A stretch of 64,000 nt of DNA, from positions 1 to 64,000 of the IMG/VR virus record IMGVR_UViG_3300049460_000312, one strand, 5' to 3'. This document shows positions 19,868 to 32,479 of the stretch, piece after piece (within the stretch, counting starts at the first letter, position 1; each line of letters begins with the position of its first letter). Position numbers and translations under genes: made by a program. The notes under the pieces were generated by a model. It was not told where the DNA came from. It did not search any database and worked only from the letters and a program-made list of their open reading frames with translations.

Positions 19868-21685
19868 TTAAGCCGCCTGCTTCAGGCGTTCGCAGACTTC
19901 GGCGTACGTGGTCGGGCGCGGAAATGCGCCATTCACGTACATCGCGCGCAGCTCACCCGAGGACGTGATAATGTCCTGGATCGCCATTTGCTGTTCTTCC
20001 AGCTTGACGAAGTCGCCGCGCTCGTTCTTCACGACCTTCAGGAAACCCTTGGCGGACTTCTTGTTAGTGACGCCTTCGGTCTTCGGTGCCTTGAAGAGTT
20101 CGATCACTTCGTCTTCCACCCGCACGGCGGTGGCCTTCACGGCAAAGCCGAAGGTGTCGCGCGTGTTGTGCTGGTACGTGTAGGAGCCGATACCGAACAC
20201 CGTGTTGCAGGAGGCGAAACCCTTGACGTAGAGACGTCGGAGGATTTCATCCGCACGCTCGACCGTGATCGAGTCACCGTAAATCAGACCGACCCGTTCG
20301 TGCAGGACCTTGTAGCCGAGCGACGTCTTGGTGCCGCCGAAGATATCCCACAGCACTTGCACCGCACCTTGTTCTTGCGGCGTGAGCGGCCACTCGGGCA
20401 GCGGGACGATGCAGTAGCCATTGTAGTTCGCCGTGTACCACTTGCCTTGCAGACGCTCGTCGTCTTTGAGAATGGCGCGAACGATTTCGCCACCACCGAA
20501 GTTGACGAGGAAGTCCTTCGGCGCATCGCGCATTTCGTCGGTACTCGACGTGATGCGCAGGAAGTCGTCCTTGCTGTGGACGTAACGACCCGCGAGCACT
20601 TCAACAGGGTCGCCCGAGTCCGGACGGAACACCACCTTGGCCAAGCCCATCTCGTCCGGCTGGCGGGCGAGGATTTCGTTCTTCAGGCTGGCTGCGATCT
20701 CGGTGATCACCTTCCAGAAGTCGAAAGAGTCCGACACCAGCGAGACCACACCGGTCGGATGCTTCTTGGTCAGTACGTCGAAGATGAACTTACGCTCGCC
20801 TTGGGCGCGCAGCTCGTCCATATCGAGGCCGATCTTGTCGTTCGGATAGTGCGCGTGGATCTGCTTGAGCAGCTTGCTGACGTTGAACAGAATGTTCGAC
20901 GTCGCCACGGCGTGTTCGGTAGCGACCACCGAGCAGGCGACGAATTCCTTTTCGACGTTGGCCCCGTACATGTCTTCGACGTAGTCGATGGCCGGCAGCG
21001 TATCGGTGCCCTTGAAGACGATCTGATGACTCGAACCCACCCGTGCCGCATCTTCCGGACCGGAGAGTCCACGGAAGGAGAAGTCATGGCCCTGGATGTC
21101 GACAAACGAGCGATCCACGCCGGTTTTATCGGCCCAGTATTCGAACGTACGGCGATACTCGTAGGCGATGGTCGCGTTGGTGGTCATCTTCCACAGCAGC
21201 GCCGACATCATCGTTTCGAGGTAGTTCACCAGCCAGTAGAACGCCGGATGCGTGTTGTACGTGACGTAGGTCGGCACGTTGATATTCACCCGCTCACCTT
21301 CGGGAAGCCCCAGCACCACGAGCGGCAGGTAGCCGAGGTCGTGCAGTTCCTCGAAGCACTTCACATCCACCCGGTTATCGCCGAGGTAGTATTTCATACG
21401 GCGCGCATAGCGCTTACAGACGGCTTCCTTGGGCTTGCTGAAGAACGAGTTGTGCCAGAGGCCGTTGATCTCGCGCATCACGCCCTGCAGGCCGTAGTTG
21501 ACGATCTTGCCGTCCCAGAAGCGCGACTTTGACTTGTTGTCGACGAACAGACGGTCCGAGCGGTACGTGCCGTTGCTGTAGGTGAAGTTCGTGCCGTCCG
21601 GGTAGAGCGGGCGATGGCCGACTTTGTAGCCGTCGGTAGTGGTGGGGGCGAACAGATGAAACGAAGTATCGTGAGTTTGGTGCAT
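19868..21685 (-). CDS. nadV: Nicotinamide phosphoribosyltransferase-like protein (probable NARP1 Namat)
   Basis: TDGYKVGH..LYP, HDFSFRG, ATEHAV, SLVSDSFD, VFRPDSGDP, GLIYGDSIT, FGIGS, TRDTFGFAVKAT, KKSAKG. Confidence 0.95.
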   Translation of the reverse strand: MHQTHDTSFHLFAPTTTDGYKVGHRPLYPDGTNFTYSNGTYRSDRLFVDNKSKSRFWDGKIVNYGLQGVMREINGLWHNSFFSKPKEAVCKRYARRMKYYLGDNRVDVKCFEELHDLGYLPLVVLGLPEGERVNINVPTYVTYNTHPAFYWLVNYLETMMSALLWKMTTNATIAYEYRRTFEYWADKTGVDRSFVDIQGHDFSFRGLSGPEDAARVGSSHQIVFKGTDTLPAIDYVEDMYGANVEKEFVACSVVATEHAVATSNILFNVSKLLKQIHAHYPNDKIGLDMDELRAQGERKFIFDVLTKKHPTGVVSLVSDSFDFWKVITEIAASLKNEILARQPDEMGLAKVVFRPDSGDPVEVLAGRYVHSKDDFLRITSSTDEMRDAPKDFLVNFGGGEIVRAILKDDERLQGKWYTANYNGYCIVPLPEWPLTPQEQGAVQVLWDIFGGTKTSLGYKVLHERVGLIYGDSITVERADEILRRLYVKGFASCNTVFGIGSYTYQHNTRDTFGFAVKATAVRVEDEVIELFKAPKTEGVTNKKSAKGFLKVVKNERGDFVKLEEQQMAIQDIITSSGELRAMYVNGAFPRPTTYAEVCERLKQAA

Positions 21686-21714
21686 GATGGTGTTTGTGTT
21701 CTTGCTGTTATAGG

Positions 21715-22614
21715 TTAAAGCGGAAACCAGTGGACGCGCCGGAGTTGTTCGTGGTTACGAAACTTCTCGCTATGCAGACGCAATTCACTCGTGCAATCCG
21801 GATGGAACGAATCGGTGGTGTAGATACGATCGAATACGTCGAGTACCGGCTCAAGACCGTAGGAGAAAATCCCGTGCGAGACGAACAGGCTCAGTTCCTT
21901 GCAACCTTCATCACGTAGGATCTTGCCAAGCTGAATGAATGTACGACCACCGTCGCAGATGTCGTCGACGACGATCAGGTTCTTGCCCGTGACATCCCCG
22001 TCCAGACGCGCAGCCGAGACTTCCATCGTCTTCGGGTCCCGTGCCTTGGTGGCTGTGACGTATGGAATGTCGAGTGCTTCCGACAGCGCCTTGATCTTCT
22101 TGACTGCACCAGCGTCCGGTGCGACCAGCATCAGATCACGCGTGTCGAGGCTCAGGATCTGATGTTCGACTACCTGACCGAGCATCTGCTTTTGCGTCGT
22201 GACGAACGATTTGTTGATCACGGCGGCAGCCACGTCGCTATGCGGATCGAACAGCGACACCGATTCCAGCTGCATGGCGTTGAGCATTTGCGCGAACATG
22301 CTCAGCGACAAAGCTTCGCCGACATTGCAAACGCGGTCCTGACGGGCGTACGGCAGATACGGAATGAACACGTGGATCTTCGCGACCGGTGCGATACGGC
22401 GCAGCGCGTCGATGGTCAGGAAAAACGCCATCACCAGATCCGAATTCGTCAGGTGTCCCGTGATCTCAACGCGCTCGCCACGAAACGTCAACGAGAACAG
22501 ATTCTTCACCACGGCTTCCGGCAGACGGACATTCACTTCACCGCCCTTGAAGGTACTGACTTCCACCGGCAGGTTCTGCATGAACACGCCGTTACCAACA
22601 CTAACCTTAATCAT
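21715..22614 (-). CDS. prs: Ribose-phosphate pyrophosphokinase-like protein (probable NARP1 Adps)
   Basis: FKGGEVNV, PYLPYARQDR, DPHS, VAPDAGA, VVDDICDGGRTF, SHGIFS. Confidence 0.95.
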   Translation of the reverse strand: MIKVSVGNGVFMQNLPVEVSTFKGGEVNVRLPEAVVKNLFSLTFRGERVEITGHLTNSDLVMAFFLTIDALRRIAPVAKIHVFIPYLPYARQDRVCNVGEALSLSMFAQMLNAMQLESVSLFDPHSDVAAAVINKSFVTTQKQMLGQVVEHQILSLDTRDLMLVAPDAGAVKKIKALSEALDIPYVTATKARDPKTMEVSAARLDGDVTGKNLIVVDDICDGGRTFIQLGKILRDEGCKELSLFVSHGIFSYGLEPVLDVFDRIYTTDSFHPDCTSELRLHSEKFRNHEQLRRVHWFPL

Positions 22615-22696
22615 GTTTTTACCCGAATGAAAATCAGGCCTGCTATATGTAAAAAGGAAGGAGGGCTGCGGGGAACAGACACCTCCTCCACGAAAC

Positions 22697-23560
22697 TTAG
22701 GCGTCGCCGGGTGACGACTGGTCGAACGCGATCCACGGCTGGTCGTGGCTCTCGCGCGGCTGCCACGTAATCAGCGCAAGATCATCAGCACCTTCCGGCT
22801 TCGGGAGGGACTGATTGCCGTAGAAGATACCGTGCGAGACGATCGGTTGCTCACGACGCGGGGTATCGACGTAATGATGCACGTATTTTTTCGTCGAGAG
22901 ATGCGACTGCGGATCGGGATGAACGTGCTTGGTGAGGTGGAGATTATCTTCACCCGGCTCGGTCACATACACGTCGACATTCAGCAACGGCGAAATGTTC
23001 AGACATGTGAACGACTGCAGCGCCTGAAACAGCTTGAAGCGATTGACACGATAGGTGTAACTCGGCGTCGAAAGAATCACCCGTACGTGTTCAGGGTCAT
23101 TGGTGCTACCCCGTACGTAGAACTCTTTGACAAGCAGATTCGGACTGTCGTTCTCGCTGGGCTTGATCTTCACTGCCGTGACCAGCTCGCCCATGAAGTA
23201 CACCACGTTATCTTCTCGGTCGGCCCAGTTAAAGCCCGACAGGAACAACATGAGACAGTAGGCGTGCTTGCTGTCGATCACGAGATCCTGGCCTTCGCAT
23301 TGCAGCACGAAGTTAGCCTGGGTCTTGCTCGTGAAGCCATCCTTGTCGACCGGTAACCACTTCGGCACGTCGTAGCGGTCGTACTCGGCGTGCGCCTCGG
23401 CGTCGCTTTCCAGCTTCACGATCCGGAAATGCTCATCCGGTGTCAGGACGTTACCGTCCTTGTCCTTGTATTCCGAGAGACCCATGCTGATGGTCACCGA
23501 ACTATTGCGATCCATGCGCCGACGGGATTCTTCCTTTGCCAAACGTTCTGCTTTAGACAC
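22697..23560 (-). CDS. Hypothetical protein
   Basis: ORF 22697..23803; likely GTG start at 23560 with GGAG RBS. Confidence 0.8.
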   Translation of the reverse strand: MSKAERLAKEESRRRMDRNSSVTISMGLSEYKDKDGNVLTPDEHFRIVKLESDAEAHAEYDRYDVPKWLPVDKDGFTSKTQANFVLQCEGQDLVIDSKHAYCLMLFLSGFNWADREDNVVYFMGELVTAVKIKPSENDSPNLLVKEFYVRGSTNDPEHVRVILSTPSYTYRVNRFKLFQALQSFTCLNISPLLNVDVYVTEPGEDNLHLTKHVHPDPQSHLSTKKYVHHYVDTPRREQPIVSHGIFYGNQSLPKPEGADDLALITWQPRESHDQPWIAFDQSSPGDA

Positions 23561-23879
23561 AACCTGCTCCTTCAAGAGTTTCCCCGCTGAAGCGCCACTC
23601 CACGTGTTTCGCATCCATACGGTTTTTGAAATAGAACACCGGCGAGAGCACGTCGTCGAACTTGCGCGGCATGCCATGCAGATACGACCACGAGAACGTG
23701 GTGATACCTTTTGCACGCAGATGCTGGAGTAGCTCATCGATCCACAGATCCAGTGGACGGGTCTCGCTGGTGATGGGCGGGAAAACGACGGTGTACCAGC
23801 CATACGGGGTCGGCCGATCGAAGACGGGCTCTTCTTTCTTGCTGGTATTTACCGGCGTAAGTTTTTTCTGTTTCTCCAC
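23553..23879 (-). CDS. Hypothetical protein
   Basis: 108 aa ORF between thyA and the next gene. Confidence 0.7.
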   Translation of the reverse strand: MEKQKKLTPVNTSKKEEPVFDRPTPYGWYTVVFPPITSETRPLDLWIDELLQHLRAKGITTFSWSYLHGMPRKFDDVLSPVFYFKNRMDAKHVEWRFSGETLEGAGCV

Positions 23880-23886
23880 GACGACC

Positions 23887-24771
23887 TCAGACGGCGAAGG
23901 GATACTGGATGGGCGGGTGAAACGCCGTGTACTTCACTTCGAAGTCATTCACCGTGACCCACGACTCGACATCGGCCAGCGTCTTGATATCCGGGTTGAT
24001 ATCGATGGTCGGTTCAGCCAGGATCGGGCGATCCAGCTGTTCCTGGACCAGGTCCAGCTGGTTGCCGTAAATATGGCAGTTGACATTGCGGTGATGAGCG
24101 TACTTCGGGTTCTTGCCCGTGATCTGCGCCATCAGACGCAGCAGCAGCCACACCTGCACCATGTTCGCAACGGTCCCGAGCGGCCAGTCCGACGAACGCT
24201 GGGTCGAGTTCAGGTACAGGTCGTTACCCAGCAACGAGAACTGGTGTTCGTACATGCACGGACGCAGACATCCCAAGTAGAACATACCTGGGTTCCAGAA
24301 CGTGATAATTTCACCCCGATCGTCTTTGCCGGCCTTCAGGTTGTTGTAGACCTTGTGGAAGAGATCGATGGAATTGTCCGGATTCACATCGTCACGCACC
24401 GGCCAGTTCTTGGCGACTGCGCCGTAGATCAGACCGAGGTCATCCTCACCCTTGCGGTACGGACTGTTCAGCCACGCTTGGTTCTCGTTGGCATTGGCAT
24501 CCCACGACTTGGTGCCGAGGGCGCGCATCTGGGCGGCCGACGTCACGCCCTTGAGATACCCCAGCATCTCGGCGATCGGCAGCTTCACCGGTGCCTTGCG
24601 CGTGGTCACGATCGGGGCCTTGTTCGTCGTGGCATCATAGGTCATGTCGATATTGATCACCGTCCGACAGGCGATACCGGTACGCTCATTCGGGAGATCC
24701 ACCCCGTTGTCGTAAATGTGCTGCAAACCTGCGAGGTACTGCATTTCGGCGCGATCGATAGCGTGGGACAT
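23887..24771 (-). CDS. thyA: Thymidylate synthase
   Basis: ERTG, PIVTTRK, DLGLIYG, LRPCM (catalytic Cys), QRSSD..LG..AN, HIYGNQ. Confidence 0.97.
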   Translation of the reverse strand: MSHAIDRAEMQYLAGLQHIYDNGVDLPNERTGIACRTVINIDMTYDATTNKAPIVTTRKAPVKLPIAEMLGYLKGVTSAAQMRALGTKSWDANANENQAWLNSPYRKGEDDLGLIYGAVAKNWPVRDDVNPDNSIDLFHKVYNNLKAGKDDRGEIITFWNPGMFYLGCLRPCMYEHQFSLLGNDLYLNSTQRSSDWPLGTVANMVQVWLLLRLMAQITGKNPKYAHHRNVNCHIYGNQLDLVQEQLDRPILAEPTIDINPDIKTLADVESWVTVNDFEVKYTAFHPPIQYPFAV

Positions 24772-24862
24772 GGCTGTGATGACAAAAAAATAAAAGGTTG
24801 GAATTCGGGAGAAGCAGCGCGAAGCTGCTCCTCTCCACATACAACCTTCAGGCCGGTATTTT

Positions 24863-25288
24863 TTAGTGAGCCAAAATCCAGATCACCAGCGGTGCGATCA
24901 CCAGCACCACAAACAGGGCCGCCATCCCGCCTCTGATAAAGAGTTTGTCGTGCTGTTCTTCCCGACGTTTTCTTTCTTGCGCGATGTCTTGCTTGATCTG
25001 CAGCTCGATCTCTTCGCGCGAGGCGCGCGGATTGATGCGGCTCTTCGGGTCGTTGAGCTGGTTGTAAAGCTTTTGTCCCAACGCTTGCACTTCAGGACAT
25101 GGCTGTGTCGGCGCCTTGCCGAAGTCGGGCTGGCCTTCTTTCTTGCTGAAGATGCCATCCAGCGCGTGGCACAATTCTTCCTGCTTTTCCGGTGACATAG
25201 TCTTGGGCACGCCATCCGGAGTGAAACAGTAATACCCACCTTCACATCCAAGAGAGGAACACCCGCCAGGCTTGCATGTTGCTTTCAC
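24863..25288 (-). CDS. Membrane-anchored hypothetical protein
   Basis: N-terminal Cys cluster, C-terminal TM helix. Confidence 0.7.
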   Translation of the reverse strand: MKATCKPGGCSSLGCEGGYYCFTPDGVPKTMSPEKQEELCHALDGIFSKKEGQPDFGKAPTQPCPEVQALGQKLYNQLNDPKSRINPRASREEIELQIKQDIAQERKRREEQHDKLFIRGGMAALFVVLVIAPLVIWILAH

Positions 25289-25291
25289 TTC

Positions 25292-25771
25292 TTAGTTCTC
25301 CAAGTTATCCATCATGAACCGCACTTTGGGCAGCTTGTTGTCGTGGTCAAGGAACGCCAACCAGACCTGCCCGTCTTTGTAGCCAACCCAGATGTCGGCG
25401 ATATGCTGCATGACTGATGCACCGGCATCCTGGAATTCAGGTCGATCGCCGACGTAGCAGTGCATCTCGTGCTTGGCCTTGAACTCTTCATGATTCGGTG
25501 TCGGCGAATGACAGATAGCCTGCGCGATCAGCTGGAAGAGAGCACGTACACCCGAGTAGTCGAGTTCGAAGTCAGCGTTAGATAACTCGAAACCTGAAAG
25601 CTCTTCGGTAGTGGTGACGTTAAACGTCAGGATGCCGGTGTTGTGAACCGGCTTGGTAGTCAGCTTCGAGACCTTGCCGTCGACGATCACTTTCAACGGT
25701 GTCTTGAACATGTCGTTCTGTTTGAACAGTTCGAGCACACCTGCATCAGCCATGACTTGTGGAATACGCAT
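25292..25771 (-). CDS. Hypothetical protein
   Basis: 159 aa ORF, AAGGAG RBS. Confidence 0.8.
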   Translation of the reverse strand: MRIPQVMADAGVLELFKQNDMFKTPLKVIVDGKVSKLTTKPVHNTGILTFNVTTTEELSGFELSNADFELDYSGVRALFQLIAQAICHSPTPNHEEFKAKHEMHCYVGDRPEFQDAGASVMQHIADIWVGYKDGQVWLAFLDHDNKLPKVRFMMDNLEN

Positions 25772-25783
25772 GTCTCTCTCTCC

Positions 25784-26149
25784 TTAACGAGTCCGTTCCC
25801 AACGACTTTGTTCCCACCAACGACGGTCTCGCTTGTAACGCGAGCCACCACCTGTATCCGGTTCTTCCGTGGCATCCTGCGCCGGCATCGCTTCGTACGA
25901 GAACTCGATTTCGTTATCGACCAGCTTGGTGCCTTCCGGGAACTTTGCAAACACGCTCCCGTCTTCGTTCTGGAACACCCGGCCGATCACGAAACCTCGC
26001 ACGCCATCACGCTCGATCTTGCCAAACGCTTCCATGTCATAGCGCTCACGCGGCCAACCCTGTCCGATCGGGGCTGCAGTTTCCGGAGGCGGATTCTCAG
26101 CGGCGGCCTGTCGGGCGAGTTTCTCGCGGTGGCTTTTCTTACTGCTCAT
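25784..26149 (-). CDS. Hypothetical protein
   Basis: 121 aa ORF, GGAG RBS. Confidence 0.75.
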   Translation of the reverse strand: MSSKKSHREKLARQAAAENPPPETAAPIGQGWPRERYDMEAFGKIERDGVRGFVIGRVFQNEDGSVFAKFPEGTKLVDNEIEFSYEAMPAQDATEEPDTGGGSRYKRDRRWWEQSRWERTR

Positions 26150-26161
26150 TATTGTTCTCCG

Positions 26162-26482
26162 TTACTGGATATTGAGGAGGGTGCAAACTTTGTGGATGAG
26201 TTCGAAGAAGACGTTCTGGAAACCATGCCACGACGTAGTGGGGCGCGTGTACACATCGAGGTGGCCGACCAGGATGGCCTGACCCAACACAAAACCGACC
26301 ACGGCCATGGCGATGATGGTCAGTATCCAGTCAATCACTTTGTTCCAACGCTTCATCTTGCGATGCCGCAGGATCGTTCTGGCTTGCGCACGACGCAGCG
26401 AGTCGCGGCGCACGATGGTGCTCAGCGGGTAATCGAGGAGATTGAATTCGGTAATCGATTGCTTTTGCGAAGTGCGGAGCAT
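26162..26482 (-). CDS. Single-pass membrane protein
   Basis: Basic stretch then VIDWILTIIAMAVVGFVLGQAILV. Confidence 0.75.
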   Translation of the reverse strand: MLRTSQKQSITEFNLLDYPLSTIVRRDSLRRAQARTILRHRKMKRWNKVIDWILTIIAMAVVGFVLGQAILVGHLDVYTRPTTSWHGFQNVFFELIHKVCTLLNIQ

Positions 26483-26504
26483 GGTGACCTCATTGAAGTG
26501 ATGA

Positions 26505-26546
26505 CGGCATAAAAGACAGGCTACGGGTAAATCCGTAACCTGTCTC
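26505..26546 (-). terminator. Terminator with TTTTATGCCG tail
   Basis: Minus strand GAGACAGGTTACGGATTTACCCGTAGCCTGTCTTTTATGCCG. Confidence 0.85.
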
Positions 26547-26554
26547 GGGTTTGT

Positions 26555-27316
26555 TTACTGGGCGATACCCAGGTACTCCTCCATACTCGCGTGCGGCAAG
26601 CGAAGCATCGAGTTGCGGTAGTAGAGTGCATCAACTGACGAGATGCGGCTCAACACCACTTCGCCTGCTTCGAGATGCTGCTTCGAGAGACGCGTAATGT
26701 ACAACATGGCCTTGTGCTCGGATTCAAACTCTTGGGCCAAATCCGTGATATCCCAATGGCTGATGTCCGTCAACCCATGGTGCTTCACGAAATAATACAT
26801 TGCCCGGTTTGCATTCGGGATGGTTTTGAGCACGTAGTTGTTGAACGTCAGCATACGCTGACTGATGCGGGCCAGGATTGCCAATTCGGGAACCGTAGAG
26901 ATTTCCTCGAAGTAGAAGACAGCGCCGGTTTCCCGATGACACAGCTTCCACACGGTAAAGCGAATCTTCTCTTCACCGGGCAATACGCGATACGCCCCAC
27001 CGCGATTAGGACTCGGACGCTTATAAAGGACACCGCGTTCCGAGAGATGGCTGAGCACGGCACGTGAGGACAGGTACAGCGCATCCTTCGTGTCTTTGGT
27101 GATCTCGGCCATAAAGAGGAGCACTTCAGAAGGATTCGTTTTGAGCAATTCCTTCAGAAGGTTCGGGTAGTTGTTCTTACTCCGTTGTGCTCGACAATTG
27201 CGCATCGCACGCACAAAGCTTTTCCCCGTCGCTTGGTGCGTGTAAATGTAGATGCCTGGGCCACTATAGAGCACTTGGCCCGTAACCGCACGAAACTTGA
27301 AACCCGCGATTTGCAT
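26555..27316 (-). CDS. Tandem degenerate GIY-YIG-like protein
   Basis: PGIYIYTHQATGKSFV and TVWKLCHRETGAVFYF. Confidence 0.75.
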   Translation of the reverse strand: MQIAGFKFRAVTGQVLYSGPGIYIYTHQATGKSFVRAMRNCRAQRSKNNYPNLLKELLKTNPSEVLLFMAEITKDTKDALYLSSRAVLSHLSERGVLYKRPSPNRGGAYRVLPGEEKIRFTVWKLCHRETGAVFYFEEISTVPELAILARISQRMLTFNNYVLKTIPNANRAMYYFVKHHGLTDISHWDITDLAQEFESEHKAMLYITRLSKQHLEAGEVVLSRISSVDALYYRNSMLRLPHASMEEYLGIAQ

Positions 27317-27483
27317 GATAAGACGTCACAGACAGAAAGTGTTTTAAATTAATTAGCTGACTAGCCGACATAATGGTCCGTTCACGTCGACCCTACCCTG
27401 AACCATTGACGATTTAGCAACGGAGTGCGCAAACGCACGAAGATGCTCCCTAGGCCGCCAATGTTTTCATAGCAATAGATGAC

Positions 27484-28170
27484 TTAGCGCAGATGCGGAA
27501 ATACTTGTGACAATGCACCCGCTGCGCGGACTTCTTTCGAGCCGCGTTCAAAGAACGAGTCAAGCCGCGTGATGTTCAGGAGGTTGTCGCCGACGCCCTG
27601 ACTGGCCAGTCGGCGCTTCGCATCTTCGAGCTCTGCTTCCACCACATTTGACCAGACAAAGTTCTTGCCAGTCTTGTCAGCGCGCCAGCCGTCCGAGGAT
27701 TCCGTATCGGTCGCCCAACTCGTCGGATACGGGAGCATGACGATCGTAATCCGCTTCACTTGTCGCCACAGCAGGGCTAACAAGGCTTGATCACATTGCT
27801 CGCGCTTTTCCTTGATCGTCTGCAGCGTGAGTGCGTTGCTGAAAACGGTGAAGTAATAACCTGCGTAATCGTACGGCGAACGATCAGCGAGAATCAGATT
27901 CGGCTGATGGCGGCTGGCGGCATCGTGACTCACACCCCGGTAGAGGCGTTCGATGTTATCGGACATCACCTGATGCTGAAAATTCCGGTTGAATTCCGGG
28001 TCCTTCAATGCATCGCTTTCGTTGGTAAGGCCGTGCCTGGCATAGGTCTCGCGAGTAGACGAGTAATACGCCATTGTAGTCAGACCACGACCGGAGGCCA
28101 TCTTGGCACACGTATCCATCAGCGTGGTCTTGCCGACCGACCCTGCCCCTGCAAACATTAAGAGTTCCAT
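27484..28170 (-). CDS. P-loop nucleotide kinase (AAA_28/dNMP kinase-like)
   Basis: FAGAGSVGKTT and LADRSPYDY. Confidence 0.85.
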   Translation of the reverse strand: MELLMFAGAGSVGKTTLMDTCAKMASGRGLTTMAYYSSTRETYARHGLTNESDALKDPEFNRNFQHQVMSDNIERLYRGVSHDAASRHQPNLILADRSPYDYAGYYFTVFSNALTLQTIKEKREQCDQALLALLWRQVKRITIVMLPYPTSWATDTESSDGWRADKTGKNFVWSNVVEAELEDAKRRLASQGVGDNLLNITRLDSFFERGSKEVRAAGALSQVFPHLR

Positions 28171-28338
28171 TTCGAGTACGCTCAGTATGGTGACAAAAAT
28201 AAAGAAAGGAGAATTGACCAGCTGAAAGCTTAGTGTCATATAAGCTTTTTGCCGGTAAAAACTTCTTTCTCCCTGTCACTGAAGCGCATTGGAAATGTCA
28301 CGCCAAATAAATAAGAGGGCCCGTAGGCCCTCCCTCTC

Positions 28339-28851
28339 TTAGGTAGTAACTTTGTCGGAGGCTCCTACTTCCGGCGTAATCGACTTCAGGGTATTGGTCA
28401 GTGCCATCCGCATAGCTTGAATCCGCGAGTCGTTCAGTGGATCGCGCGGACCTGCTTCGATAATGCGCAGGGCGCTTCTCGGTAACTCCCAGGTGTAGTG
28501 CATCGCATCGCTCACTGCGTTTCGCAGTGTATTGTCGTAGCGGTCCCACTCCGCCCGAAAGTAATGGATCACCGTGCCGCAATAAAGTTTATCTTGCAGC
28601 GGTGCGTTGTCTGCGGTAACCGTTTCAGTCACTAGCGGTAACTTTTCGATGTTGCGCAAACGCATTCCTACCTTTTCGAGACTTTCTTGCTGTAGCGTCT
28701 GTATCATGGTGGCGCCACGCTCTACCACTCCACCTGGGAAGCAGTAGTGCGCAATGCGGCCATGTTCATTCCATACCCGTCCCAGACAGATCCGGCCATT
28801 CTTAACGATCACTACGCGTGCTGTGGCTCGCAGAGGAAGTTCTTTGGACAT
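28339..28851 (-). CDS. Nudix-fold protein with a degenerate Nudix box
   Basis: RATARVVIVKNGRICL, FPGGVVERGATMIQTLQQESLEKVG. Confidence 0.8.
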   Translation of the reverse strand: MSKELPLRATARVVIVKNGRICLGRVWNEHGRIAHYCFPGGVVERGATMIQTLQQESLEKVGMRLRNIEKLPLVTETVTADNAPLQDKLYCGTVIHYFRAEWDRYDNTLRNAVSDAMHYTWELPRSALRIIEAGPRDPLNDSRIQAMRMALTNTLKSITPEVGASDKVTT

Positions 28852-30518: not shown

Positions 30519-30665
30519 TTAGGTGGTCACGCCATACAGCGGACGCACCACACGCGGATGGTTATCGCCCTGGTCGTCCCAATGCGTGGTCAGACCATTC
30601 AACGCCACGTAAGCGATGAGCAAGCCGACGATCACGCCCGCAGGACTTTTGAGAAATTTCTTCAT
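30519..30665 (-). CDS. Small membrane protein (48 aa)
   Basis: Below the track cutoff; MKKFLKSPAGVIVGLLIAYVALNGLTTHWDDQG... Confidence 0.65.
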   Translation of the reverse strand: MKKFLKSPAGVIVGLLIAYVALNGLTTHWDDQGDNHPRVVRPLYGVTT

Positions 30666-30668
30666 GAC

Positions 30669-30875
30669 TTAGAAGCGGAACGAAAACGAAGAGGGGCGAG
30701 CGCGATACTGATACTCGTAGTCGTACGTCGAGTAGTACGTGGTCGTGCGGGAGGTCGGGATGAAGCAGAGGATCAGCACGATCACGAAGAAGGTGCCGAA
30801 GAACACCGGGTCCAGCAGGATCAGGCCGATGATGACCACGAGGATCAGCAGACCGATAACGGTATCTTTCTTCAT
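30669..30875 (-). CDS. Small two-TM membrane protein
   Basis: 68 aa, very hydrophobic, Tyr/Thr-rich tail. Confidence 0.75.
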   Translation of the reverse strand: MKKDTVIGLLILVVIIGLILLDPVFFGTFFVIVLILCFIPTSRTTTYYSTYDYEYQYRARPSSFSFRF

Positions 30876-30921
30876 TTATTATTTTTCCTGAAAAGGTTAC
30901 AGAAAGGGTACAGCGGCGGGC

Positions 30922-31146
30922 TTAGAAGGCCCAGGTCTTTTCCTCCGGAGCGCACAGGGTCGTGCCAAACACTACGTCGATCAGGGTGCAGAGCAAGCCG
31001 AACACCAGCAAGCCGCCAATGAAGATCACCACCGCCTGGAAAATCCAGCCGAGCAGTGTGCCGATACCCGCCGCGATGCTGGGGATAGCGATCAACACCA
31101 GTGCGCAAATGGCGATGACGAAGATGAAGCTTACGAAGCTGCTCAC
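30922..31146 (-). CDS. Small two-TM membrane protein
   Basis: 74 aa; GTG start with AAGGAG RBS. Confidence 0.8.
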   Translation of the reverse strand: MSSFVSFIFVIAICALVLIAIPSIAAGIGTLLGWIFQAVVIFIGGLLVFGLLCTLIDVVFGTTLCAPEEKTWAF

Positions 31147-31175
31147 GTTGAAACTCCTTCCGTTGTGTTACCAAA

Positions 31176-31488
31176 GCCCGTAATGCTTAGGACCCTGCAG
31201 GATATCCTAAGCAATACGGGCGACCCGTATTGTCATCGCTCGATAGGCTTGTCCTATAACGAGAGGTTTGCACATGTTACGTCCGCCGTCGTGTGCTACG
31301 GCCATAGCGTTTTGGTCAGTCTGGTGACTGTGTGATAGTTCTCTCAAACGCCGGAGCGTCAGTGGATCTTAAGTCCCGGGTGTCGTCTAGTGACACCTAA
31401 CTAGGGGATATTCGTAAAGCAGGTTCTCCTTTGCTTCTAGCGTTCGTTGCAAGGGAAGTGACTTATCGCCCCACTTCGTAGGCGTGCC
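31176..31488 (-). ncRNA. Candidate structured RNA / regulatory leader
   Basis: About 310 nt non-coding gap with at least 8 hairpins and two mutually exclusive stems. Confidence 0.55.
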
Positions 31489-31489
31489 G

Positions 31490-31921
31490 TTAGGCTGCGG
31501 CTGCAGCGGCGCCGAAGTCGGTCGCTTCAGCAGTCTTGGAGAAGCCTTCGATGAACTTCGCCTTCATACGACGCACCGTCAGGTTGCCAACGATGTCACC
31601 GATGTTCCAACCCACCGCCATCGCACCGATGTGACCGACGATGATCACGATGTAGTGCAGGGCCAGCGCCAGGCCCTCACCCAGACCGAGAGCGGCCAGA
31701 TAGGCGATGCCGAAGTGCATGCCGAGAGCGATTGCCGTGATCGCTGCGATGAACACCAGCGTCCAGAAAGCGATGCGCAGCCAGTAGGCCCAGAACGTGA
31801 GCGGCTCATTCTTCTTCGCGGCGCGCGCTGCCTTCTTCGCGGCCTTTTCTGCTGCCTTCGCTGCGGCCTTGTCGTTGTTAGCCGATGCGTTTGCGTTGTT
31901 TGCGTTTGCGTTTGCGTTCAT
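31490..31921 (-). CDS. Two-TM membrane protein with an Asn-Ala repeat N-terminus
   Basis: MNANANANNANASANN; AGGAG RBS. Confidence 0.85.
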   Translation of the reverse strand: MNANANANNANASANNDKAAAKAAEKAAKKAARAAKKNEPLTFWAYWLRIAFWTLVFIAAITAIALGMHFGIAYLAALGLGEGLALALHYIVIIVGHIGAMAVGWNIGDIVGNLTVRRMKAKFIEGFSKTAEATDFGAAAAAA

Positions 31922-32007
31922 GGTAAAACTCCTGATTTAGTGTTTGACTACAAAGGTTTGGAAAAGCCGAGATGGCGCCAGCTCATTGGCCGACGTCCTT
32001 ATTGCAC

Positions 32008-32116
32008 GCTGCGACAAAAACTAATTGCTTAGCTTCGGTCGCAGCTATGCTCTTATGCACACTCCCTACTTCGGAATGCACATAAGAGCAGCCTCTACAC
32101 CCGAAGGCGCAGAGGC
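32008..32116 (-). other. Three abutting RNA hairpins in an intergenic leader
   Basis: Stems 32008-32045, 32048-32090 and 32091-32116; G-U pairs and UUCG/GCAA loops work on the minus strand. Confidence 0.7.
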
Positions 32117-32128
32117 AGTCGTGGTAGC

Positions 32129-32479
32129 TTAGCTACCGAGGCCCAGCATTGCCTTCGACTGGCGGATGCTTTCACGAATCATGCGCTTGGCTTGCCAGGT
32201 CTGGACGATCATGATCACGACGCTCGAGGCGATGCCTGCAACCACTGACCACACCAGGAACGAGCACAGGCCTTTCGGGCTGAGGAAGCCATCCAGCACC
32301 AACACTGCGACCCAGGCCAGATTGACCTTGAGGCGATGCTTGAAGATGAACTCTGCAAACTGATCGAACTTGTCGCGCTTCTTCGCAATCGTGCCAGCGA
32401 TCAGTCCGACGGTGACGCTCACAACCGTCAGCGTTACGAGGAAGAAGAACACTGCGTTGAATGTGGTGAGGTATGCCAT
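32129..32479 (-). CDS. Three-TM membrane protein
   Basis: 116 aa hydrophobic ORF; AGGAG RBS. Confidence 0.85.
   Translation of the reverse strand: MAYLTTFNAVFFFLVTLTVVSVTVGLIAGTIAKKRDKFDQFAEFIFKHRLKVNLAWVAVLVLDGFLSPKGLCSFLVWSVVAGIASSVVIMIVQTWQAKRMIRESIRQSKAMLGLGS

Follow-up and report, generated by a model that had tools for sequence, protein, structure and literature searches.

Transcriptional riboswitches and attenuators share a recognisable organisation, in which a conserved folded domain is followed by two mutually exclusive helices that share one strand, a U-rich tract and the ribosome-binding site of the next gene, and in the SAM-II, preQ1 and fluoride classes the sensor is built around pseudoknots. 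In giant phages of the phiKZ group, small RNAs derived from 5'-UTRs by premature termination are described (PMC11512511), including sRNA005 of 201phi2-1 and a phiKZ sRNA upstream of gp182. Long-read end mapping in 201phi2-1 revealed 132 terminators and 11 small RNAs, of which eight arose by premature termination in 5'-UTRs, and those authors argue for undiscovered antitermination. The sRNA005 and gp182-associated RNAs are under 250 nt, lie upstream of a tail gene, begin at a mapped start site and end at a terminator just before a gene. Other RNAs with some similarities are tmRNA and the pseudoknot domains of plant-virus 3'-UTRs, which reach 300-400 nt with several H-type pseudoknots, and the large ornate phage-associated RNAs ROOL and GOLLD, the functions of which are unknown.

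Here we consider an element of a phiKZ-like (Ripduovirus-like) Ralstonia phage. The stretch of DNA analysed, referred to below as the window, constitutes the first 64,000 nt of a complete 283,373-bp virus record with terminal repeats (IMGVR_UViG_3300049460_000312), and the DNA derives from rhizosphere and soil metagenomes. The neighbouring genes encode phiKZ-like virion proteins and the nearest isolates are Ralstonia phages FLC1-1B/FLC4-3B and RP12/RP31 (genus Ripduovirus). The element fills the 343-nt gap (31147-31489) between two minus-strand genes, 31490..31921, encoding a 143-aa membrane protein (phrog_32185), and 30922..31146, encoding a 74-aa protein with two TM helices (phrog_32022). 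It extends over positions 31173-31501 and is single copy in the phage genome. Like the riboswitches it carries a conserved folded domain supported by covariation, followed by mutually exclusive helices, although the presumptive sensor is much larger (about 250 nt with three pseudoknots), the element lies between two genes and starts inside the upstream ORF, the U tract is weak or absent in some members, and the genes that it may regulate encode small membrane proteins of unknown function. The element shares the phage group and the position of a structured, terminator-like end just before a gene with the giant-phage sRNAs, and it lies elsewhere in the genome. It resembles tmRNA and the plant-virus domains in length and in its string of H-type pseudoknots, but no tRNA-like domain or tag reading frame is present and ARAGORN detected no tRNA or tmRNA in the window. 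In contrast to ROOL and GOLLD it is smaller, is not near tRNA genes, is tied to one gene pair and carries a clear switch-like platform, although its self-complementary apical loop could, in principle, support self-association.

A preliminary description, made from the sequence alone, had reported consecutive hairpins at positions 31176-31488 (minus strand) ending in a 17-bp stem followed by TTT, with an alternative pairing that excludes this stem. That observation is confirmed: each of the hairpins is present in the sequence, and the stem 31176-31192 / 31205-31221 and the alternative pairing of 31212-31220 with 31224-31232 are exactly there. The folding energy, one of the points on which the proposal had been set to stand or fall, is only modestly unusual relative to dinucleotide shuffles, with z-scores of -2.26 for the minus strand and -2.86 for the plus strand, and the comparative evidence therefore carries most weight.

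By blastn, the gap is 85% identical to the FLC phages, against 79% for the gap plus flanking genes, and it is the only stretch that still matches at the DNA level in RP12/RP31. The annotated gaps are 342 nt in all four isolates. Using the neighbouring 455-aa virion protein as a guide, which yielded a graded series of relatives from 79% to 33% identity, metagenomic contigs were retrieved, and an nhmmer search located the element in every contig whose virion protein is at least about 50% identical (contigs L012 to L022). In total, this gave 14 distinct sequences, 13 in addition to the window, with gaps of similar size (about 260-380 nt) at the same place. A covariance model of the 5' domain found the element once in the window's own genome and gave no match to the whole genomes of the more distant jumbo phages FLC9, LucasX and RSF1. 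Pattern scans of IMG/VR with three conserved words returned only RP12 itself, and a pattern scan of GTDB genomes gave six hits in unrelated bacteria, scoring 11-18 bits with the 5'-domain model, which we take to be chance. None of the 4227 Rfam 15 families matched the window at the gathering threshold; at E<=10 the region yielded only chance miRNA/snoRNA hits far below threshold, and at E<=1 nothing was detected in the element for five homologue loci. No paper describing the element was found in the library searched.

The components of the element, in 5' to 3' order on the minus strand, are as follows.

31486..31501 (minus strand): P0, hairpin GCCG[CAGCC-UAA]CGGC, with the stop codon (31490-31492) of the upstream 143-aa gene in its loop.
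31455..31483 (minus strand): pseudoknot a with P1; the 5' flank GCCU (31480-31483) pairs with the P1 loop GGGC (31468-31471), and P1 is GAAGUGG (31471-31477) with UCACUUC (31455-31461).
31412..31441 (minus strand): P2 region, with a small hairpin GCU-AGA-AGC (31433-31441), a purine-rich loop AAAGGAGAA and the conserved (C/U)UUACGA (31412-31418).
31379..31404 (minus strand): pseudoknot b with P3; CUAGU (31400-31404) pairs with the P3 loop ACUAG (31387-31391), and P3 is GGUGUC (31392-31397) with GACACC (31379-31384).
31347..31360 (minus strand): P4, hairpin GACGC-UCCG-GCGUU, followed by a conserved purine tract (UUGAGAG here, UUGAAAGG in most).
31317..31330 (minus strand): P5, hairpin CAGUC-ACCA-GACUG, then the conserved ACCAAAACGCU-AUGG.
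31270..31302 (minus strand): pseudoknot c; stem S1 is GCCGU (31298-31302) with ACGGC (31285-31289), and its loop GCACA (31292-31296) pairs with the downstream UGUGC (31270-31274) to form S2, across a linker that is A-rich in most homologues.
31239..31263 (minus strand): variable region, hairpin CUCG-UU-AUAGG-ACAAG-CCUAU-CGAG, containing the conserved motif (C)UAUCGAR (31239-31246).
31224..31232 (minus strand): strand A (CAAUACGGG), which pairs with strand B to form the putative anti-terminator hairpin.
31176..31221 (minus strand): terminal stem, terminator-like; the 5' strand 31204-31221 includes strand B (31212-31220), the apex is CCUGCAGG, and the 3' strand 31176-31193 includes strand C.
31173..31175 (minus strand): short U tract (UUU); homologues have UUUU to UUUUUU, and it is absent in RP12, L013 and L022.
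31144..31161 (minus strand): Shine-Dalgarno GGAAGGAG (31154-31161) and GUG start (31144-31146) of the conserved 74-aa 2-TM protein gene (30922..31146).

Covariation, also named beforehand as a test, supports most of this architecture. RNAalifold applied to 10 full-length homologues gave 28 of 53 pairs with compensatory changes, most densely in the terminal stem, where most of 18 pairs show such changes (for example alignment columns 309:336, with CG 5, GC 3, GU 1 and AU 1). For the 5' domain (P1, P2, pseudoknot b and P3; 13 sequences), 94.5% of cells are paired and 11 of 21 pairs show changes on both sides; none of 500 column shuffles reached this level, and when the partner was slid by 1-3 columns pairing dropped to 27-43%. 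P1 is 97.8% paired, with double changes at 4 of 7 pairs, and has the consensus GAAGYR/YRCUUC, while P3 is 100% paired with double changes at 4 of 5 pairs. In pseudoknot b, where (C/U)UAGY pairs with RCUAG, pairs 88:102 (C-G 6, U-A 3) and 93:100 covary, and the pairing takes the forms CUAGU:ACUAG, UUAGUC:GACUAG and CUAGCU:AGCUAG. In the P2 region, pair 46:51 of the small GCY-NNN-RGC hairpin is C-G in 6 sequences and U-A in 5, and CUUACGA is nearly invariant, but the rest of the pairing is ambiguous.

The remaining helices, P0, pseudoknot a, P4, P5, S1 and S2, were counted on hand-registered strands and are 86-100% paired, exceeding column shuffles, although these counts are inflated because registers were chosen that pair. 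Pseudoknot a varies as GCCU:GGGC, ACCC:GGGU and GUCU:GGAC (93% paired; 1 of 1000 shuffles as high). P4, which often has UNCG-like loops and is followed by GAAAGG, varies as ACGC/GCGU, GCAC/GUGC, GCGG/CCGC and GUGA/UCAC (100% paired, 4 of 4 columns with double changes, 0 of 1000 shuffles as high). The closing pair of P5 varies (C-G, G-C, G-U, A-U) and the module is absent in four deeper-branching members, L016, L018, L019 and L020, so that the RNA is modular; in the conserved sequence following P5 the consensus is CAAAACGYU-AUGG. In pseudoknot c, the loop of S1 pairs with a segment 8-17 nt downstream, and S2 is present in all 14 sequences (including GCACGUG:CACGUGC, GUGCAU:AUGCAC and UGCGUG:CACGCG), with double changes in 7 of 7 columns and 0 of 1000 shuffles as well paired. 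The hairpin of the variable region occurs only in the window, FLC and RP12 sequences; this region is deleted in L022, and UAUCGAR is retained in 11 of 14. UAUCGAR was considered as a promoter word and rejected because it occurs only once in the window. Moreover, six SNVs seen in related metagenome populations (31161, 31223, 31238, 31283, 31315 and 31331) all lie at unpaired positions of the model.

Of the hairpins in the preliminary description, GAAGTG/CACTTC, GGTGTC/GACACC, CAGTC/GACTG, GCCGT/ACGGC, the terminal stem and the alternative pairing are supported by covariation, while CTCG..ATAGG/CCTAT.CGAG is limited to the window/FLC/RP12 subgroup. Two of the proposed helices are not conserved: GCGTTT/AAACGC is not supported, since GCGT belongs to the covarying local hairpin ACGC-UCCG-GCGU, and AAGCAAAGG/CCTGCTT is ambiguous because it competes with the covarying GCY-NNN-RGC hairpin. 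The core consists of three H-type pseudoknots rather than a chain of simple hairpins, and these pseudoknots, together with the hairpin enclosing the upstream stop codon, had been missed.

The possibility that this is not an RNA element, but a DNA-level signal such as an origin, packaging site or protein-binding palindrome, a missed small gene, or chance hairpins, receives some support from the plus strand folding as well as the minus strand, from the terminal stem with its palindromic apex being a near-perfect DNA inverted repeat, and from small ORFs placed in the gap by gene callers in L014 and L015. However, 23 G-U wobble cells in the 5' domain would be A-C mismatches on the other strand, which places the RNA on the gene strand, the pseudoknots covary, and the shuffle and slide controls exclude chance. 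No conserved ORF exists and each sense frame carries 2-13 stops in every homologue, which also rules out read-through or frameshifting into the gap. These explanations are essentially excluded.

P0 was found in 13 of 14 homologues as a 4-7 bp hairpin around the stop codon with different sequences, including GCAGCC[UAA]GGCUGC, CGCUAA[GUAA]UUAGCG, UGCCGC[..UAA]GCGGCA and UACUGC[UUAAU]GCAGUA, and its core is 98% paired against 54% in shuffles. The structure thus starts inside the upstream coding sequence and is intercistronic rather than a free-standing leader. The upstream protein ends in alanine-rich tails in nearly all homologues (AAAAAA, VAAA, AKAAA and others), the GCN codons of which (window 31490-31520) form the 5' strand of P0; either the RNA structure shapes the protein's C-terminus or an Ala-rich degron-like tail was co-opted for pairing. 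The N-terminus of the same protein (window 31880-31921) is an Asn/Ala repeat (MNANANANNANA...) which varies in length in related metagenome populations, with a 6-nt deletion at 31898 and a GTT insertion at 31903.

The location of P0 raises the possibility of a post-transcriptional device within a polycistronic mRNA, either an RNase III/E processing site or exonuclease block that uncouples the stability of the two cistrons, or a translation-coupling switch in which the ribosome stopping in the P0 loop would melt P0 and pseudoknot a and refold the RNA. The stop codon lies 7-10 nt before pseudoknot a, the terminal stem is long and near-perfect at 17-19 bp and is retained in the homologues lacking a U tract, and in L022 the SD lies 7 nt behind the stem. 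Nevertheless, about 300 nt separate the stop codon from the platform, no conserved pairing of strand C or of the stem with the SD was found, and U tracts are enriched after the stem in most homologues, and we consider this reading unlikely.

The terminal stem occurs in 12 of 14 homologues, with 8-19 contiguous bp in the helix search or 16-21 bp when up to two mismatches are allowed. Its tail is U-rich in about 8 of 12, and a consensus scan for intrinsic terminators did not call the stem in the window, where the tail is only UUU. The apex (31197-31204) is always self-complementary and conserved as CCUGCAGG, CCUAGG, UCUAGA or AUGCAU, and it is retained in L020 although the stem there is shortened. 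It might mediate loop-loop self-association or protein binding, but statistically this is weak because only about two independent changes are involved.

In the window, strand A (CAAUACGGG, 31224-31232) pairs with strand B (CCCGUAUUG, 31212-31220), which is also the base of the terminal stem where it pairs with strand C (31176-31185). The same arrangement recurs with other sequences: UAAUACGA/UCGUAUUA in L014, CGGACA/UGUCCG in L015, UGCUGC/GCAGCA in L019, GCUGAC/GUCAGU in L022, CGGGUCC/GGACCCG in L012 and CGGGCCC/GGGCCCG in L013. Tested against shuffled upstream sequence, 11 of 12 homologues carry such a hairpin, with a combined Fisher p of 4e-9; the sequences are related, and this figure is an upper bound on the significance, but at least six variants are distinct. 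A thus covaries with B, and B with C, and a three-way change is visible, which is the signature of two alternative structures both under selection. The full terminal stem is, however, much more stable than A:B (-12 kcal/mol for A:B in the window). The A:B hairpin shows no conserved sequence or bulge and Rfam gave no T-box hit, so that the element does not qualify as a T-box leader; nor does it qualify as a group I/II intron, given the absence of an Rfam hit and the upstream ORF ending with its own stop codon and the downstream ORF having its own SD and start in all 14.

The downstream gene invariably belongs to the same family, encoding a 2-TM protein of 55-90 aa with the C-terminal motif E-K/R-T-W-x-F/Y in an alignment of all 14. 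Only 25-35 nt lie between the stem and the start codon, leaving little room for a promoter. Elsewhere in this genome the usual intergenic module is a GC-rich hairpin with a tetraloop directly followed by TTTATGC(C/T)G, 30-55 nt before a start codon, with thirteen cases (for example at window 26513 and 42277, minus strand). It resembles the TATG late promoters of phiKZ and is probably a terminator fused to a late promoter; TTTATG is also conserved before the same genes in L012, L014, L015 and L019. This module is absent after the terminal stem. A similar one, with a hairpin at about 32093-32119 followed by CTTATG, begins a leader of about 160 nt upstream of the 143-aa gene (window 31922-32128, minus strand; the same place in L012, L014, L015, L019 and L021), and a transcript could start there and run through this gene into the element. 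The leader also contains a motif GGCUUUUC(Y) about 45 nt before the start, which is conserved in all clade members examined but is not a genome-wide word, and could be a second conserved RNA or promoter element.

Most homologues, however, carry a conserved UUUUCUAC(A/U)A about 22 nt before the downstream start codon, which may be a separate promoter, part of the RNA, or only the U tract with a conserved spacer; GGCTTTT/GGCTTTGG was rejected as a general genome motif. If it is a promoter, the element could be a stable non-coding RNA with a function of its own, such as a decoy, scaffold, ribozyme or anti-defence RNA, constituting the 3'-UTR of the upstream gene or cut out of it, with the terminal stem simply its terminator and protective 3' end. 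The size and complexity, with three pseudoknots and invariant loops, are more typical of large ncRNAs than of most leaders, the apex motif is retained even where the stem is shortened, and intergenic sRNAs are reported in 201phi2-1. Against this, a plain terminator would not need the A:B alternative, the structure begins inside the upstream ORF, linkage to the same two genes is strict in all 14 cases, and the element is single copy with no homologue found outside this clade or away from this gene pair. This is the main rival and remains possible, but is less likely than the reading that follows.

The interpretation offered earlier, a riboswitch- or attenuator-like leader or a standalone phage ncRNA of no recognised family, is partly supported, in that a structured minus-strand RNA with mutually exclusive stems and no Rfam match is established while the choice between the two is not. 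We consider it somewhat more likely than not that the element is a cis-acting, intercistronic regulatory RNA of about 330 nt, transcribed with the upstream membrane-protein gene and controlling read-through. The analysis itself demonstrates a conserved, pseudoknot-rich RNA structure, with the invariant unpaired motifs CUUACGA, CAAAACGYU-AUGG and UAUCGAR and alternative helices at its 3' end supported by covariation, joined to the upstream ORF and placed directly before a conserved small membrane-protein gene; its transcription, the sensing of a signal or binding of a ligand by the 5' 250 nt, and the control of read-through or, less likely, of processing or translation, are inferred from sequence alone. 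In this view, when A:B is held in place by the state of the sensor domain, the base of the terminal stem cannot close next to the U tract and the polymerase would read on into the 74-aa 2-TM gene and the small membrane-protein genes behind it; otherwise transcription would end, or the RNA be sealed, at the terminal stem. The signal might be a small molecule, an ion, a protein, or the terminating ribosome at P0, although no ligand and no link between the sensor domain and strand A could be derived. Pairing of UAUCGA with the 5' strand of P3, of the purine tract GAAAGG with the U tail, and of the terminal loop with the CUAG strands was also examined, but the complementarity seen in some members is not consistent. 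In the nucleus-forming phiKZ group, to which these phages belong, transcription is separated from ribosomes, and if this holds by analogy for the present phage, a co-transcriptional signal would therefore have to be a diffusible ligand or an imported factor.

The general kind, a cis-regulatory switch RNA, is already known, while the size, the triple-pseudoknot build, the overlap with the upstream stop codon and the occurrence in nucleus-forming jumbo phages set this element apart as a distinct new family. Large RNAs with several covariation-supported pseudoknots are rare, and almost none are known from these phages, whose gene regulation is poorly understood. The element offers a well-defined, testable case of putative RNA-based control of transcription read-through by a phage, possibly by its own unusual polymerases, which would carry an unidentified signal and point to a cluster of uncharacterised small membrane proteins as its targets. 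The isolates FLC1-1B, FLC4-3B, RP12 and RP31 carry it and grow on culturable Ralstonia, so that experiments are feasible.

Five consecutive small predicted membrane proteins (116, 143, 74, 68 and 48 aa; window 30519-32479) flank the RNA, for which PHROGs, Pfam and the Atlas gave only "unknown, membrane", and no endolysin or holin annotation was found nearby. They are candidates for lysis or membrane-remodelling functions; holins of phiKZ-like phages are not known to have been identified. A more speculative and, on present evidence, unlikely extension is that the element represents a new class of large riboswitch working inside the phage nucleus, in which the triple-pseudoknot domain would bind a diffusible metabolite or signalling nucleotide and, through the A/B/C switch, time the expression of holin-like small membrane proteins, acting as an RNA-based clock or checkpoint for late events such as lysis.

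Downstream on the same strand (window 19868-28851) lies a block of nucleotide/NAD-related genes encoding a NAPRTase-family protein (19868..21685), a PRPP-synthetase-like protein (21715..22614), thymidylate synthase (23887..24840), an AAA_28/dNK-like kinase (27484..28239) and a NUDIX hydrolase (28339..28851), and the Prs-like plus NAPRTase-like pair recalls phage NAD+ reconstitution pathways. Finally, the distant clade member L020 carries a second large gap of 415 nt (L020:6725-7139), which starts with a strong terminator-like hairpin (AAGGAAGGGAU..AUCCCUUCCUU) and gives a weak hit to the 5'-domain model (19 bits, E = 0.004-0.007), and it could be another structured RNA or a degenerate paralogue.
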